In this document: positions 3,142 through 53,949 of the stretch, piece by piece
Layout of the letters: every line of letters starts with the position of its first letter
Position numbering within the stretch: the first letter of the stretch is position 1
DNA from: Adineta vaga
Lineage: Eukaryota; Animalia; Rotifera
DNA: 64,000 nucleotides
Assembly (NCBI GenBank): GCA_021613535.1
Contig: CP075494.1
Span: 13,268,001 to 13,332,000, forward strand
Direction of reading: 5' to 3'
Notes under the pieces: model-generated
Databases searched by the model: none
What the model was told of the DNA's origin: nothing
The model's input: only the letters and a program-made list of their open reading frames with translations
Position numbers and translations under genes: made by a program

Positions 3142-5426
3142 TTATGCATTATTATTATTGTTTTTATCATCTTGATTGTCTGTTGTTAATGGTGATGAAG
3201 TTGTTCGAGTTGATAAATGTTCTAAACGACGTCGACGAATAAGATCAGTATCATTTTCATCGACAACTGGAGTCGAAGGTGTAGTAAGAATTTCATTAAC
3301 ATCAGTTTGAAGATTTCTTAATATACGTGAACCATTTTCCATATTACTACAAAATAAAGAAATGTACGATTAATAACAGAACAAATTCGATAGACAAACC
3401 TTTGTGTCGATACGATATTCATGTATTGTTGCATTTGTATCATTGATGCATCTAATAGAGTTCGTACATTACGTAAACATTGAATACGTGCTTGAACATG
3501 AGCTAATTCAGCTCCTTCCATAGCTCGAATGGCTTCTTCAGACATTCCAGTAAAATTTACAGGTGGTAAAGGTGGAGGTGGGAAAGCTAATTAATATTAA
3601 CAAAAAATTATCGATTTTGTTTGTCTATTAGAAAAACATACCGAATGGTGGTAATACCATGGGAAATGAACCGAATGACATTTGTGGCATCATGAATGTT
3701 GGTGATGATGTTTGAGCAGTTGTTGGATTAAATGATGTAAAGTTAAAAACAGGTGGAATAGTTGATGAAGCTGCAGAAGGTGGAGGCGATGACGCTGAAG
3801 TTGATGAATGTGGCGCGGAAGATGCGCCTGGAGGAACTTGAGCTAAAACATTATGAAATTATTCACTATTGATCATTTTTTTCTATTTGCTCCTTTTACC
3901 TCCATTATTAGGTGCTTGACCTTGATATTGTTGCTGCTGCTGTTGTTGTTGAGGTTGTTGTGCTGCTCCTCCAGCAGGTGCATTTGCAGCTGCTCCTGCT
4001 GTTCGAGGAGCTGCTGGTCGTAAGACCGTTGTTCGACAAATAGGACCTAAATTTGAATTGATAATTTAGAAAAACTATTTGGTTGAACATTTTAACTTAC
4101 AAGTTTGTTGCCGTTGAAACCATGAGCGTAAACAATTTTTATGAAATATATGTTGACAACCAAGACGTTTAATACTTTGTTGTACTTGCATTTCTTCTCG
4201 ACATATAATACATGTCGTATCAGTAACATTAGCAAGTTCTTCTGCAGTTAAATCTGCATACATTGTATTTAAATTACGAATAGCTCGTCGTGATTCAATC
4301 ACATCACTACAAGATTTACGGAATGCTCTAAAAGAAAACAAATACACAATAGAAGAATATCAGGGGAAAAATATCAATACATACTTCATGGCAAGAAACA
4401 TTGGTCGAATGGCAAACAAAGGAAATGTATGAATTTTCATCATAACAATCATAAATATCATATAGAGTAACACACGAAAAAAGCCAAGAATAAGGTCCGA
4501 ATAAAGCATAAATACACCTTTATTTTCCCATTGTTCACCGGTACGAATTTCAACTGTATGTAGAATATATTTCATAGAAGTTGAAATAACAGTAACAAGC
4601 AGAATAGCATACTAAACGAAATTTTCATAAATGAATTCTCTATCAAAAAACAAGACACCTTGATCTTACTTCAAAACCAAATACAATTTGTACAGATGCT
4701 CCTCGTGTTATTGTATGTGAATATGCTGACAGAACGAAGAAATAATCCAAAAGAAATAGAACACTTGATAAACCTATACAAAAAAAATATATACTTTACG
4801 AATGAATAAGACAAAGAAAAAACTCACCAATAACCCGTGCGTGAAAGATTGGACCAAGGACAGGACTTTGTTCCATCTATAATCACAATTCATTCGGTAA
4901 AATTCAATATATTTTGAAATGTATCACTTACATAATCGATTCGATCTTCTAATAACCAGTGAAAACATTTTAGAAATAATAAAATAGCAAATAAACCAAC
5001 AAAACGTGGACTGAAATCATCTCGAAAAACAGTAAATGCTAAGCATGTTTCTGTTACTGAAAACCATGTACGATCATAAAGATGCTGGAAATAGAACAAT
5101 GAATAATCATATAGAAATTCATTTCATTCCACGAACCTCTGTTTCAATTGCTCGTAGTTGACCAAGAAATATTTTTTGAATAAGTTTACCAAATAGAATA
5201 ACGAATACGAATGCTTGTACATAAAGTACCTGAAGAGATAATTTATAGAATCGATTAAATCTTATATTGAATTATTTACTGCAAGACTTGTACTTGATTT
5301 TGTTAGGTAGACAACAGATGGATAAAATTGTTTTTTCGTATAAAAAGCATTTGTAACGACAGAAAATGTCATGAAGAAACTAAGCAATACTAAATATTCT
5401 GCTTTCATTGATGCAATTTGAGGCAT
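3142..5426 (-). CDS. SYVN1: E3 ubiquitin ligase synoviolin/HRD1 (multi-exon)
   Basis: N-terminal KKQFYPSVVYLTKS, then TETCLAFTVFRDDF, FPLFAIRPMFL, RING-H2 [32 protein letters not shown], a Pro-rich region and C-terminal IRRRRLEHL. Confidence 0.95.
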
Positions 5427-40456: not shown

Positions 40457-41600
40457 ATACAATTTATACACATTGTTTAATACTGTTGTTTCAATATAGA
40501 AGAAGAAAATCGGATAGAATCGATGAATCCTGAAGTTGAATTATTAACAAATCAAGTTTTTATCGTCTTCGCAGAACTAATAAAATACGAATGTTTGTTA
40601 TATGATTTGATCTAGTCTAAACAACTTACAATAATGTAAAGATATAAGTAATTGAAATAGAACAGAAAGAAATATCGTCATAAAACAGATGATATAGATG
40701 TGCCGAGTCAAAAGAATGCTTTGGTAACTTCATCAATTTCAGTTGTCCCATTGAATTGCTTATTTATTTAACTTATCAATTGAAAATCTACAAGTTTCCA
40801 ATTTGTATGTCATCCTTCCCCTTAATGTAAGATGCGCACTTATCACAGTTATACGCATGAAATTTCATACTTCGAAATGCATCTCATTTAAAATGTTAAT
40901 TTTGACCTCTGGAAGTACCTAAAACCAACTTGGAGGTCTCGAGAAAAGTATCTTTGCATCTTTTACGAATACTTTGATATAAAATCAAGTGAAAAGAAAA
41001 TCGACTTTTTCTCGTTTTGATTTCGACTATGCGAAAGAAAAATAAACATATTTTGTATGGCAGATTTAACTGTTCTTATCTATATCTTTAGATTTTTTAT
41101 GAACATTATTTACTAAAATAACTAAAGTCGATAAATTAGCTCGATATGCAACGCCATCTACATCGAATTTGGATATTTGTCCGTGAAGTTCTATGGCCTG
41201 GAAGCCAGATTGATCTATCGACGATGTTTTCCTACTCATAATAATTATCGTTTTGTTAAATTTTAAATCATTTCAAACAATTCTTTGTTGTAGAAAATGT
41301 ACTTAAATGAACCCTCTACTCCCTGACATTGACTAAGCATTGTACCATACATGTCCAGAAAAGATTTTCGTCGATAAATAGTCAATGCTACGATAAACTT
41401 ATCAATGACAGATAATTAAATAAATAAACTTTGTTTATTTTCATCGTCCTTCATTTTTTTTAGATATCCGATCGATTATTTTTATCTTTTATCTTTGAAT
41501 CGAATCTTCATCGGCAAAAAAGATATTTTTATCTGTGTGCCCAATATCATATTATATGTACGAATTAATAATCAACTGAAAAGAAGAAAAAGAAAACAAA

Positions 41601-44600
41601 ATGCCAATTTCAAAAATAAAACATGCTGCAAAATCATTGAGAACGTTTCAAGGTATTAATTTTGAATCTTGTTTGGATAATGGTGAAACTGCAGAACAGA
41701 TGAATAAATGGCTCCTAGAAGTATCATGGGAAGTCGCTAATAAAGGTAAACAAATTATTCGCATTGATTGTTTATCGAATGAATTCATTTAGTTGGTGGA
41801 ATCTATACGGTTATTCGTTCAAAAGTACCAATAACGAAAAAAGAATATGGAAATAATTATATATGTATGGGTCCATATAATGACTCATTTGTTAAAACTG
41901 AAGTTGAAGTTGGTGAATCAAAAATTGAAGCAATACGAGAAACAGTTAATGAGATGAAACGTTATGGTGTTCATGTAAATTGAACGAAATCGATTTAATT
42001 AAAACTTGAAATGATTCTTATAGGTTGTTACAGGCAATTGGTTAATTGAAGGTTTTCCACAAGTTGTTCTCTTTGACATCGGTTCAGCTGCACATCGATT
42101 AGATGGATGGAAAGGTGATTTTTTCGAAAATGCTCATATTGGAATTCCATACCATGATCGAGAATCGAATGATGCATTAATTTTTGGTTTTTGTGTTTTT
42201 TGGTTTATTGGAACAGTGAGTTGAATGATGAAATATATTGTTTCATGTACTATGAAATATTTTTATAGTTTATTGAACATGTTAAACGAATCAAAAAGTG
42301 TTATGTCATTGCTCATTTTCATGAATGGTTAGCAGGTGTTGGTCTAGTGATGACACGACTTCGTGGTTATGATTGTTCATTGATATTTACAACTCATGCA
42401 ACACTTTTGGGACGATATTTATGTGCTGGTTCAACTGATTTTTATAATCATTTAAGTTGGGTAAGAATCTTTGTTTTATAAGACAATGTCGAATTGAACT
42501 TTGTTTTGTTTTTATAGTTCGATCTAGATAAAGAAGCTGGTGATCGACAAATCTATCATCGATATTGTATCGAAAGAGCTGCTGCTTCTTGTGCGCATGT
42601 TTTTACAACAGTTTCAAAAATAACTGGCATCGAATCGGAATATTTATTAAATAGAAAACCTGGTAAAGAAAATCTTTTTCTGTTTATATTATGTTCATTT
42701 TGCTCTACATATGATTTTTAATTTTTTGCTCTCAGATATATTGACGCCCAATGGGCTTAATGTTCAAACATTTGCTGCTTTGCATGAATTTCAAAATATT
42801 CATGCTCAAAATAAAGAAAAATTGAATGCATTCATACGCGGACATTTCTACGGGTAATATTTGTTTTTCCATAGATCTTTTAACACCCAATGGTTTAAAT
42901 ATTCAATTATATCGACGTAAATCACGTTCGATGTGGACAGTAGATCCAATGCTTGTATCACAAGAAAGAATAACAAATTTTGTACAAGGACATTTTCTAG
43001 GGTAGAGTACTATTAACGACAAAATGTATTGATTTTGCAATAGAACTTCTTATTTCTTTCTTTCTTGTCTCGTCTTGTCTCGTCTCCTTTTCCTTCTACA
43101 AATTTTATTCATTTAGACATTATGATTTCGATTTGGATAAGACTCTATACTTCTTCATTGCTGGACGATATGAATTTACGAATAAAGGTGCGGATATGTT
43201 CATTGAATCACTAGCTCGATTAAATCATATGCTTAAAGTATGAGAACATCTATTCTTCAATCATTGTTACATGATTTATTCTTTTGCAGTCATCTGGTTC
43301 TGATGTGACCATCGTTGCATTTATGATCTTTCCGACATCAACAAATAATTTCAATATCGAATCATTAAGAGGACAATCAGTTGCTAAAATGCTTCGTGAT
43401 ACTGTACAAAATGTCCAAAGTGAAATTGGCAAACGACTTTATGAAATTTGTCTCAGGTAAAAAATTGTTGTTCACTGGAATAAACACCGATTTTTTCGAA
43501 ATAATAAAGAACGATCAATGATTAGTATTTGAGTTTTCAAGTGAATTATTATATTATTTGAAAAGAATACTGACATTCTTTTGAATGCAATCCTCTGATT
43601 CATCGAAAACAAAACATAGTTATATTTAGTAACAGACACGTGAAAGAATAGAACAAGGAGTAAAAAACGACTAACTGATAGGTATATCTAGAGAATGCAT
43701 ATTGTGTAAAATACCTAATCTATATGGTTAGTCTGTTTTTCATTTCAGAGGTCGACTTCCAACGCCAGACCAGATATTACATCCGAGTGATTTAATTGAA
43801 TTGAAAAAATGTATCTATGCTTCACAAGTATATTATTTTTCTCTGCGTATTTCTTCTTATTCTTCCTTTATGTGGTTTCTTTTTCTTAGCGATCAAACTT
43901 GCCACCAATATGTACACATAATGTAACTAATGATTCAACAGATCCTATATTGAATGCACTACGTCGTTGTCAATTATTTAATGGACGATATGATCGTGTT
44001 AAAGTTATATTTCATCCGGAATTTTTACGTTCAACAAGTCCATTATTACCAATGGATTATGAAGAATTTGTTCGCGGTTGTCATCTAGGTGTTTTTCCGT
44101 CTTATTATGAACCATGGGGTTATACACCAGCTGAATGTACCGTTATGGGAGTACCAAATATCTCTACAAATCTAAGTGGATTTGGTTGTTTTATGGAAGA
44201 ACATGTTCAACAAGCTGAAACATACGGTATTTATGTTGTTGATAGAAGATATAAAAGCGCAGAAGAATCTTGCCAACAGCTAGCTCAAGTAAATAGAGAA
44301 ATTTCTTTACTATTCCAGACTATTTTTAAAATTCTGATTTTGGTTTCATTTTTTAGTACATGTTCGATTTTTCACAACTTACTCGACGACAACGTATTAT
44401 TCTACGTAATCGTACTGAACGATTAAGTGAACTATTAGATTGGAATACATTGGGCATTGTAAGTCCATAAGTATATTAAGTGAGAATAATTTGAATGTAA
44501 TCACATTTATAGTATTATTATCGGGCTCGACAAATGGCTTTACAACGTACTCATCCCGAATTTGAAGAAGAAGCACTTCACTTTGTATGAATATTCTTTT

Positions 44601-45490: not shown

Positions 45491-45876
45491 AACAACATTT
45501 ATTTCCAATCAATAGAAAAATCCCTTAGTATTATGTTCTAATCCTGCTTCGTAGAAGACTTGATCAACATACATATAGTATTATCTTAGTATTGGATTTA
45601 GTTTATTTTGATTCTATTTTAAATAAATCGTTTTATCCAAGCATTAGAAAAAAAGCAATCATACTAAATCTATTCACGGAATACTCATTACATTTCCTGG
45701 ATAGATGAAAACAGGAATACGAACAGGGGGAGACGAACTTGATCGCCGTGACACGGACAAGTTTTTCAGAAATTATTTGTAAACGAATGAATGAAGAATG
45801 TTACTTTAAACTAAGTAAGAATGTGTTTCGTACATTTTTGTAAACAAATTGGATAGGAAACCCTTTGAAATCATGA
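45491..45876 (+). repeat. Left copy of a direct duplication (GYS 3' region + CEP76 3' end)
   Basis: Aligns to 51074-51569. The first ~186 bp differ at about four positions; the remainder is diverged with deletions. Confidence 0.9.
45690..45876 (-). pseudogene. Degenerate fragment of the last two CEP76 exons
   Basis: Decayed copies of HDFKGFPIQFV and GDQVRL..RIPVFIYP; frameshifted and missing the segment containing the stop codon. Confidence 0.8.
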
Positions 45877-46606
45877 GACAACAAAGTTCATGAAATAACA
45901 CACGAGACGATCTACTTATATTTGTTTAGCCGTTTTGTCACTACCACAAATGAGAAAGCAACACTTATACCAAGTCATTCTTCACAGAGCAATTTACAAA
46001 AACCAGTTAATCTAGACACAGTTTCTAGTGGAAATTATTTGGAATATCTACGCCACAAGCACTGTTTTTACATCTTCCGTTTTTTTCTGATGCATCTCGG
46101 AATATTACATCGATTTTAGAATGAATAAGTGGAGAAAGAGTACGTCACACCAAGTGCATTCGAACAGAAGTGCAGTTTAGTAATCTTTTCCCGTTTGATG
46201 TATACATCGATTGAAAGTTATAATATCATATTTTAAATGTGTGAATATTCAAAATAAAAAGAAGTGAAATGATTTACAAAGCTTTTATTATTCACTCGTT
46301 AGAATAATGAATGAAATACAGCTTCGTTGCTAAGCTAATATAGGTCGAAGATGCAATCTTGATAGATGCCGCGAGTTTATAGGATGAAATATGATCCGAG
46401 TTCATCAAGATTTTCAAAAAATCCTTTGAATTAAAGTCTCATAGATAGTGAAGTAAAATACTATTTATACATACTACCTTTCTACCCATCTAAATAAAAG
46501 ATTCCAACTTATTAAGATCGCATCCAATCACGATTATCGTAATTTTTCTCAATTTATTTCTTGCCACTCATTGAACACAATTAACTTTTAAAAGATATAT
46601 AGTTTT

Positions 46607-51073: not shown

Positions 51074-51569
51074 AACGACATTTATTTCTAATCAATAGAA
51101 AAATCCCTTAGTATTATGTTCTAATCCTGCTTCGTAGAAGACTTGATCAACATACATATAGTATTATCTTAGTATTGGATTTAGTTTATTTTGATTCTAT
51201 TTTAAATAAATCGTTTTATCCAAGCATTAGAAAAAAAAGCAATCATACTACATCTATTCATAGAACATTCGTTACCGATTCCATTTTGTACATTTTCTAT
51301 TTTGTTGAACCAACACTTTTATAACGACATGCAAACATCATCCAAGTCGCAATTGCATTTTCTGGATAGGTGAAAACACGAACACGAACAGCAAGACGAA
51401 CTTGATCGCCATGACAGCAGACAATTTCTTCACATAAATTATTTCTAAGTGAATGCATGAATGAATGAACGAACGAAAAGTGAATGAAGAATGTTACTTT
51501 AAACTAAATATAAATGCTTTTCGAGCATTTTTGTGAACAAATTGGATAGGAAAACCTTTGAAAGCATGA
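51074..51569 (+). repeat. Right copy of the direct duplication (intact CEP76 3' end and downstream region)
   Basis: Aligns to 45491-45876. Confidence 0.9.
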
Positions 51570-53898
51570 CCATTTGGTACTGCTCGTCGAACAGCTTCTT
51601 GAAATTCTTCACTGCCAACAGATAAACCAGTGACACGTTCTAATTCATATGAAGAAAGTGCTGGACTTAGCAGATAAGATAAATGATCATCAAATTGAGT
51701 TGTATAACCAAGATCCTAAATAGAATAGGAATAATAGAGAACAGCTAATGAGATTGACTTACTTTTCGATGTTGAATAATGAGAGCTCGAATTTGTTTTT
51801 CAATATCATTTGATAATGCAATTGGATTAAGTGTATTCTGTGATAAATGAGGCATAACGGGTGCAGTAATAACAAGACCAGGTGTATTTATTGATGGAAT
51901 TGCATCTGGTGACATTGCTTTCCATTTTGATTGATCTGTTAAACGAAATACACATGTATCCACATTACACGTCGGCTAAACACAAAACAAAACAAGAGCA
52001 TGAATTACTTCAGTGATTATTTTCATACTTGTATATTTGCGTAGAAGGATTTATCATTAAATATACAACCAATTGTTCGATATGGATGACGAATATTATT
52101 TAATGATAATTTATCAAGTGGAGGATCATCAGGATCAATGGATGTATGTTGATATCTGAATGATTTGAATTAAATTTATATCGAAGAATGATTTCATTTC
52201 ATTTAGTAAATTTTACCTATTTCCATTTAAACTTTCCCAAAAGAATACATCATCTGTTCCAATTGTAACAACCCACGAATGAATTTGATTTTTACCTTTT
52301 GTACCAATACCTAAATAAAAATAAAAGTCAATTATACAAAATCAAATTCAATTCCACTAAATACATACAAACATAAGCATCAAGACCAAAACCAAGTAAC
52401 AAACTGCAAAGAAGTACTGCATGATTTTCACAATCCTAAGATAATATTTTAGAAATCTATTGAAAAAAATCTTTATAAAATCTATATACCCCACAATTTC
52501 TTGCAAGAAATGCATGCGTATGTGTCCACATTTCTGTTCGATCTGTATTTCCTACAACTGAATGACGATCATAACCAATTAAACTAACAAATCGTGCTGC
52601 TTCTCTTGGTGTATCAAGTAAACGACCTGAACGTAATGGCTGAACAAAAGAAACAACAGGATGATTAACACCATTTTCATCCTAATCAAATAATTTTTTT
52701 CCATTTAAATAGATAGTTATAGAGAGAGAGAAAAAACTACTTGTCCAAAGATTTTCACAAGTCTTGTTCGATGTTCTTCACGAATTTCTAAGAATTCTTT
52801 CCACCATTGTTTTGCATAGATTAGAAATAAACGTTCTCGTTCAGTACTCTTTGTATGTTCAAGATTTATTTGTGCTGCGAGAACTTCGTCAGCAACAGAT
52901 TCTTGTAGTGGAGGAATTAATTGTAAACATACATTGATAATTCCTACTGGTAATTTATTTTCAGCACCTAACAAAACGAAATAGTTGATTGATAGCAACG
53001 TTTGAGAATCTTACCAATGCCATTCAGTTCAAGCATTCGATTGGTTTTATTTGCTGGAGCACAAAGAACTTGCCGCCATTCGAGAAAATGTGAAGAAACA
53101 AGATGAATTTCGCCTAGAGTATCTTTTCTTGTTAAAACAATATGAACACGATCACAAATTGAGAGGAGAGTTGACGAATCGGCCTTAGCACCGAATTCAC
53201 CTAAATTAAAATCAGATCATTATCGATTTAATACAATTAACAAAGTTTGCTCATAGTGAACTTTCATTCTTAGTACCTTGTTGTTTATCTTTATGGAGTT
53301 CAAGTAAAAATCCCTGATTTATATATGGTTCACCAGCACATGCAAATGGTCTAGTGCGAAAACGTTGATTACGAAATAGAATTGAAATACTAAATGATGA
53401 AGCTAATGATGATGATGAATAACCTGGATAACCTTCCGATTGTGGTTCATTCAAATAATCTAAATAAATTCTAATTATGAACAAAACATATGATATTTTT
53501 TCTATCAAAGATATACCAGTAAATGCTTTTCCATTGAGAAATTGTAAATAGAGATGTTGTCGATTTGGATCAAAATTGACTTGTTGTAAGGGAACAGATA
53601 CTAATTGATCTGTATCAACCGTATTCACAGTTGGTTTTTGTGATGGAATTGATTGACGTTGTCGTGGAGAAGGTTGTTGAGTACCAAACTGAATATTTTC
53701 CATCATTGAATCCACAACACCACGATTTTTTAATTCACGTAAAAGAGCATCTCGACTTATTGGTCCTGAATTTGGATGTCGTTGCGCATAATCATTAAGA
53801 ACATCACGAATAGCATTGTTCATATCTGATTTAGATAAATGATTGGATATGATTTGTTTAATTTCAAGAATTTTATCTGGTGCTACGGAAGAAGCCAT
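51297..53898 (-). CDS. CEP76: Centrosomal protein CEP76 (multi-exon)
   Basis: FRNQRFRTRPFAC; ERERLFLIYAKQWWKEFL; LLDTPREAARFV; DCENHAVLLCSLLLGFGLDAYVC; FKGFPIQF; GDQVRLAVRVRVFTYPE. Confidence 0.95.
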
Positions 53899-53949
53899 CG
53901 TTCAAAAATCTGAATACAATGTGACATCGGTCATCATAAGGATATAATC

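Follow-up and report, generated by a model that had tools for sequence, protein, structure and literature searches.

A conserved pair of candidate mutually exclusive exons at the glucose-6-phosphate site of a rotifer glycogen synthase gene

The DNA analysed here is a 64,000-nucleotide (nt) window of the genome of the bdelloid rotifer Adineta vaga (contig CP075494.1, positions 13,268,001 to 13,332,000), and all positions given without further qualification refer to the window. A glycogen synthase gene (family GT3, Pfam PF05693) lies on its + strand and starts at about position 41602. Two related exons, here called A and B, stand next to each other in this gene with a 21-nt spacer between them, and they correspond to a segment of the enzyme that takes part in binding its activator, glucose-6-phosphate (G6P; Glc6P when bound as a ligand). 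Exon B is probably a real, translated alternative exon of this gene, which is one of two glycogen synthase genes, and would replace exon A without ever being joined to it.

The features of the exon pair are listed in the table. The 3' end of the upstream constitutive exon supplies one base (G) of a split codon, and either A or B can complete this codon, as both begin with the two bases required and both end in GG in the window sequence. Read in this shared phase, exon A encodes 39 amino acids and then (G), and exon B encodes 42 amino acids and then (G) without a stop codon. Inclusion of both exons would insert 245 nt and omission of both would remove 118 nt; neither number is a multiple of three, and either outcome would shift the reading frame. 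Reading through the spacer from exon A gives G and then TAA. Between positions 41550 and 45050, 13 GT..AG introns were confirmed by contigs assembled from RNA-like sequencing runs, 11 of them 47-102 nt long and the other two 263 and 292 nt. With a shortest confirmed intron of 47 nt, the 21-nt spacer is too short for removal as an intron.

Homology between the two exons was assessed by alignment. The global alignment score of A and B was not reached by any of 2000 shuffles of exon B. The alignable parts are the ends, TPNGLN and NF.(R/Q)GHF, and the middle section taken alone does not align significantly (186 of 2000 shuffles). Exon B occurs a single time in the assembly (100.8 Mb, six contigs). 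The A/B pair has the anatomy expected of mutually exclusive exons that arose by tandem duplication. The original prediction, made from the letters of this DNA, had given the same coordinates and sizes for both exons and the spacer, and these proved exact. Its statements that inclusion of both exons shifts the frame, that the spacer leads into TAA, that the spacer falls far below the usual intron size and that the exons are homologous, with common ends and a common splice phase, were likewise reproduced.

Table. Features of the exon A/B region of the glycogen synthase gene (window positions)
Feature	Positions	Strand	Evidence and remarks
Upstream constitutive exon	42518..42662	+	joint 42662>42736 in the RNA-like contigs of four runs; translation
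Intron preceding exon A, 73 nt	42663..42735	+	GT..AG joint; UUUGCU at 42699-42704 and 42725-42730
Exon A, 118 nt, default exon	42736..42853	+	both flanking exons joined to A in four of four runs
Spacer, 21 nt, GT..AG ends	42854..42874	+	below any confirmed intron; in-frame TAA at once on read-through
Exon B, 127 nt, probable alternative exon	42875..43001	+	open, phase as A; orthologues; basic patch LYRRKSRS
Predicted hairpin in exon B	42908..42935	+	-9.8 kcal/mol, z -2.3; weaker in L005 (weak evidence)
Intron following exon B, 115 nt	43002..43116	+	donor GTAGAG; one UUUGCA at 43034-43039
Downstream constitutive exon	43117..43237	+	joint 42853>43117 in four runs; translation; A or B fits, same phase

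Contigs of related animals were fetched with the gene's 133-residue exon as a handle and then with exon B. The library search with the 133-residue exon returned mostly fragments, with no full-length rotifer protein among the matches. Orthologues of exon B were found in eight further lineages, in seven metagenome contigs and one Logan assembly, and comparisons across nine lineages below refer to these together with the window (L005, L010, L011, L012, L013, L017, L026 and L027). The L005 sequence recurs identically in L006-9, L015 and L016, and L010 is the same as L014. In each of the nine lineages exon B is 127 nt long, free of stops and indels, preceded by AG and followed by GT. The introns that flank the pair are indel-rich, variable in length and barely alignable across the same lineages.

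The length of the spacer also varies among the nine lineages (21, 28, 33, 21, 33, 24, 26, 39 and 43 nt), and these lengths fall into all three frame classes. Exon B can therefore be read in a constant frame only by way of a splice from the upstream exon that skips A. A small protein starting from an ATG within exon A was considered as another product of this region (a 59-amino-acid open reading frame (ORF) at 42826-43005, with P0151 and P0152 in metagenomes); it was rejected because the spread of spacer lengths over all three frame classes leaves the run-through frame unconserved.

Selection on exon B was measured with a codon model over the nine lineages, which are separated by a tree length of 3.8 substitutions per codon. 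The ratio of non-synonymous to synonymous substitution rates (dN/dS) is 0.146 for exon B and 0.017 for exon A. For exon B a ratio of 1 is rejected by a likelihood-ratio test (twice the log-likelihood difference, 2dlnL, 67.8; p 2e-16), and its variable sites at codon positions 1, 2 and 3 number 20, 9 and 33. A similar signal is seen between the two exons of the window. Over their alignable ends, the proportion of synonymous differences (pS) is 0.66, which is near saturation, and that of non-synonymous differences (pN) is 0.26, or 0.12 at the 5' end; the contrast is significant by Fisher's test (p 0.006-0.01). A copy that was dead at birth would not be compatible with this contrast. These results are strong evidence that exon B has remained a translated sequence over the whole divergence of the nine lineages, and, taken with the exon structure, they establish its anatomy, its conservation and the selection on its protein sequence. 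The original prediction had guessed that B is under selection and had proposed conservation and dN/dS in relatives as a check; the eight further intact copies and the codon model bear the guess out.

The same data bear on the possibility that exon B is a dead, decaying duplicate. Such a decay might be suspected from the middle of B, which cannot be aligned with A, and from the lack of B in the RNA contigs described below. However, nine lineages at the divergence given above keep the frame, the length and the splice sites, neutrality is rejected, and 42 random codons of exon B's composition would stay open by chance in only 3.8% of cases. Within the limits of sequence evidence, conservation and codon model together rule out a dead duplicated exon, a reading that we find hardly credible.

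Exon A aligns to residues 276-313 of human GYS1, and also to the solved chains of worm GSY-1 and yeast Gsy2p. In the cryo-EM study of human GYS1 these residues include the Glc6P contacts His291, Glu292 (across the dimer interface), Gln294 and Lys301; the segment lies at the dimer interface, and helix alpha13 moves on activation (PMC9287172). Exon A keeps the Glc6P-contacting H, E, Q and K of the motif HEFQNxHxxxK. In exon B the corresponding HEFQNxHAQNK is replaced, and none of the four contacts is retained in any of the nine lineages. The yeast residues His280, Gln283, Asn284, His286 and Lys290, on which the original prediction had relied, we take to correspond to the human contacts at an offset of 11. 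Its claim that exon A carries the G6P residues and that exon B replaces all of them agrees with the alignment and with the comparison of the nine lineages. The other Glc6P contacts of the enzyme, Arg579, Arg582, Arg586 and His501 (human numbering), are encoded outside the exon and are unchanged.

The replacement is itself a conserved sequence. The loop encoded by exon B is basic and three residues longer than that of exon A, and TPNGL, LYR, R17-S18, QE and NF.QGHF are invariant in the nine lineages. Only conservative changes (K/R, L/I, I/V) occur in the second half of the helix and in the flanking motifs. Exon B appears to keep the second helix half, which holds the fold, and to exchange the ligand-contacting first half for a basic loop. 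From this arrangement it is reasonable to infer that an enzyme containing the B segment would no longer respond to G6P.

It is also conceivable, at a rather low probability in our judgement, that the B protein is made but is not a working, G6P-blind enzyme. It might be inactive or unable to form a tetramer and act as a dominant negative, or it might go on responding to G6P by way of His501 and the arginine cluster, the contacts that the exon choice leaves unchanged. The B segment would sit at the dimer interface, in a part that is mobile on activation (PMC9287172), and in seven of the nine lineages B carries a proline at the start of the helix (DP or NP); L005, for one, keeps DP, and L026 has DS. 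A mere spoiler of the enzyme is nevertheless a poorer fit than a folded, working module to the conservative changes in the second helix half and to the dN/dS of B.

The original prediction had further pointed to RRKS in exon B as a site of the protein kinase A type (RRxS). This motif is not conserved among the orthologues: RRKS is present only in the window and in L027, and RHKS, RRKP, RRRP or RKLN is found elsewhere. Within the basic patch only R13, R17 and S18 are invariant, and any phospho-switch could rest only on this invariant Arg-Ser. A more far-reaching model can be built on it, one that we regard as doubtful. Exon choice would yield a G6P-blind synthase in which the Ser, located in the segment that takes the place of A's Glc6P contacts, docks onto the enzyme's own arginine cluster when phosphorylated. 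Control of glycogen storage would pass from a metabolite to a kinase in a state that standard cultures did not sample, such as eggs, dormancy, or the beginning or end of drying.

Three studies provided four RNA-like runs, and use of the two exons was assessed in their assembled contigs. The main contigs of all four runs join 42662 to 42736 and 42853 to 43117, at depths of 11 to 92, and cultured animals clearly express mainly the A form. The original prediction had proposed to compare these junctions with those of exon B, 42662>42875 and 43001>43117. The A junctions were seen as predicted, and the B junctions are not among the contigs. It had named the lack of B junctions together with decayed orthologues as the mark of a dead exon; the junctions are indeed missing from the contigs, but the orthologues are intact.

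Several points weigh against the view that exon B is spliced into a working, G6P-insensitive enzyme. Among the contigs of the four runs there is no splice into or out of exon B. Cover over the whole of B comes from just one low-depth contig, of run X1 (depth 3.4, compared to 70.9), which runs unspliced from 42839 to 43052 across the A donor, the spacer, B and the B donor; this is retained or nascent RNA and not use of B. A further run, X17, shows low depth across the 3' end of B and the intron that follows. A spliced B peptide was not found in two profile searches of a 5.8-billion protein collection, in the range of 23-72 residues, and the only matches of these searches were two genomic read-through ORFs. 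Finally, the donor of exon B, GTAGAG, stands apart, as G at +4 is absent from the gene's 13 other donors. The RNA and protein negatives are weak evidence, as the first come from contigs only and the protein search was confined to 23-72 residues. Assembled contigs drop rare variants, and assemblers are expected to collapse equal-length bubbles of this kind.

The spacing of the splice sites suggests how one exon would exclude the other. The A donor and the B acceptor are 21 nt apart (21-43 nt in the relatives), a distance below any intron of the gene, and for this reason A and B would not be joined. At 21 nt the branch site of the B acceptor must overlap or abut the A donor, and we infer that recognition of one should block the other. 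Seven lineages have a B donor that begins with GTAGA; in the two that are most distant it reads GTAGCT and, in L027, GTACTG. GTAGAG places TAG in frame directly after GHFLG. A similar donor, GTAGAA, belongs to an intron inferred by protein alignment in the relative L018. Weakness of the B donor would be in keeping with an exon that is normally left out.

A donor of this kind could also mean that choosing B shuts the gene down, with the weak donor left unused and the TAG after GHFLG ending translation, leading to decay of the transcript or to a truncated N-terminal domain. This reading would account for the GGG TAG that follows B in eight of the nine lineages, for the invariant GTAGA in seven of them and for the X1 contig that continues unspliced past the B donor. 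That contig is also unspliced at the A donor, however, and hence meets the TAA stop before it reaches B. In L027 Gly is followed by TAC, with the stop one codon further on, and GTAGAA does begin an inferred intron in L018. Unproductive splicing would, moreover, not select the amino-acid sequence of B. We consider a shutdown by exon choice very improbable.

The introns around the pair are enriched in a short motif. UUGC occurs 18 times in the intron before A, compared to 1.5 expected, in eight lineages with B, and 10 times in the intron after B, compared to 2.3 expected, in eight of the nine lineages (the L010 contig ends just past B); these counts are not independent, as the lineages are related, but the introns are otherwise unconserved. 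The matching introns of four genes that lack B contain UUGC once, compared to 0.7 expected. The UUGC core stands mostly within UUUGCU or UUUGCA, and these motifs may be binding sites of a splicing regulator. Within exon B, the predicted hairpin listed in the table overlaps a block of codons without synonymous change in most lineages; its pairs are near-invariant and show no covariation. A conserved RNA structure over the spacer, B and the flanks was tried with RNAalifold and rejected, as the result (-17 kcal/mol with a positive covariation term) gives too little. A double change is confined to one pair there, which belongs to an outer stem (columns 4/254) linking exon A with the intron downstream of B.

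Signals of this type raise the question of whether exon B is conserved for a role in RNA alone, as an untranslated decoy or regulatory pseudo-exon that tunes the splicing or the retention of the 263-nt intron. The lack of spliced B in contigs and protein searches would be expected in that case, as would the block without synonymous change, the small hairpin and the conserved flanking UUGC. Depth along the gene points the same way: the unspliced, low-depth contig lies over the 263-nt intron, and a bin in the middle of the 292-nt intron (43539-43655) has no depth in any of the four runs. An RNA element, on the other hand, would need neither an open frame, nor a fixed length of 127 nt, nor a three-fold excess of variable third over second positions. 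The dN/dS of 0.146 and the amino acids kept through synonymous changes point to translation, and the hairpin lacks covariation. A purely RNA-level role is improbable in light of this evidence.

An exon B that is translated in place of A remains the preferred reading, and a course of events can be proposed for it. An exon encoding the loop and the first half of helix alpha13, at the G6P-binding subunit interface, would have been duplicated in tandem to give the A/B pair. The closeness of the A donor and the B acceptor would keep the two exons apart by geometry, and the frameshift that follows from taking both or neither would do so by frame. A would serve as the default form in cultured animals. 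Where B is chosen, the protein would retain the catalytic fold and the second helix half (SQERIxNFxQGHF), lose all of the segment's Glc6P-contacting side chains and gain a basic loop, three residues longer, that ends in Arg-Ser. At present B would presumably be used in cells or conditions that the four runs did not sample, and the UUGC-rich intron motifs and the weak GTAGA donor may help to hold it off by default.

Contig C2 carries the other glycogen synthase gene, in which a 62-nt intron follows exon A and exon B is missing. Genes without exon B were also found in L021, L018, L004 and L019. L021 groups with the C2 copy at 94-98% support, and L019 is a more distant genome in which even the intron is absent. 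A CEP76 gene lies tail to tail downstream of glycogen synthase in the window, L005, L012 and L026. CEP76 was not found downstream of the C2, L021, L018 and L004 genes in the available sequence, which for C2 covers ~0.5-0.7 kb past the long exon, and the CEP76 family gave no match near the C2 copy. By synteny, exon B belongs to the CEP76-linked glycogen synthase copy. In a partitioned gene tree (nine exons as separate partitions) the B-bearing genes do not form one clade, and such a clade is not rejected (approximately unbiased test, AU, p 0.054); the synteny with CEP76 gives a clearer picture than the tree. Saturation of synonymous sites, both between A and B and between the gene copies, hides whether the exon duplication preceded or followed the genome doubling.

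Some further observations concern these copies. Exon A of L005 (positions 3961-4078 of its contig) differs from the other lineages at a pS of 0.6-0.75, compared to only 0.23-0.38 for its exon B (4107-4233), and L005 clusters with the genes that lack B in the gene tree. This pattern may reflect partial gene conversion by a sister copy. In the window, CEP76 occupies 51497-53937, and a second, short match to the CEP76 C-terminus lies at 45804-45878, directly after the glycogen synthase gene. Contigs with a cluster of mismatches at 43367-43415 and with the joints 43451>43789 and 43827>43992 (non-canonical ends, CT..GT and GT..AT) have high depth and cover conserved exons. They are most likely transcripts of the C2 gene placed on the wrong copy; if they do derive from that gene, both glycogen synthase copies are expressed.

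The design of the exon pair has well-studied counterparts in other enzymes. In PKM the swapped segment forms a subunit interface with the pocket for the activator fructose-1,6-bisphosphate (FBP), and one form of the enzyme depends on the activator and the other does not. The PKM exons 9 and 10 (PKM1/PKM2) resemble A and B in being duplicated, mutually exclusive exons of a central enzyme of sugar metabolism (PMC6420622, PMC6595688). PKM is a different enzyme with another fold and another ligand (FBP as compared to G6P). Both PKM forms are abundant in RNA and protein and have been assayed, whereas the B form of glycogen synthase is known from the conservation of its DNA alone. Exons 4a and 4b of OGDH are likewise mutually exclusive by proximity and switch the sensitivity of the enzyme to a regulator, giving a Ca2+-insensitive or a Ca2+-sensitive E1 (PMC7969005). 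OGDH differs in being a vertebrate gene with another regulator, and its branch points have been mapped, whereas the overlap of the A donor and the B branch site is deduced here from the 21-nt distance. Steric hindrance also separates exons 2 and 3 of alpha-tropomyosin, where the splice signals between the exons are too close for joining (reviewed in PMC7404189). The tropomyosin intron is longer and it is the branch point alone that lies too near, whereas here the whole 21-nt spacer is below any intron of the gene.

The effect of removing G6P control has been studied with engineered glycogen synthases. Knock-ins of the arginine cluster that are insensitive to G6P are controlled by phosphorylation alone, and glycogen synthesis drops (PMC3837029). 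The knock-ins are point mutations made in the laboratory, and they lie in the regulatory helix, whereas the natural exon described here would remove the other half of the site. No paper linking glycogen synthase with mutually exclusive exons or with exon duplication was found in the literature. The architecture of the exon pair is already known from other genes; its target, half of the glycogen synthase G6P site, is new.

Activation by G6P is regarded as a core and universal control of eukaryotic glycogen synthase. To our knowledge, laboratory mutations have so far been the only means of removing this control. An exon that occurs naturally, is under selection and swaps half of the G6P site would offer a natural experiment on the purpose of G6P control. 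If the proposal is true, it would be the second clear case, after PKM, in which splicing exchanges a pocket that senses a sugar phosphate, and it is found in animals that must manage their carbohydrate stores to survive drying and starvation.

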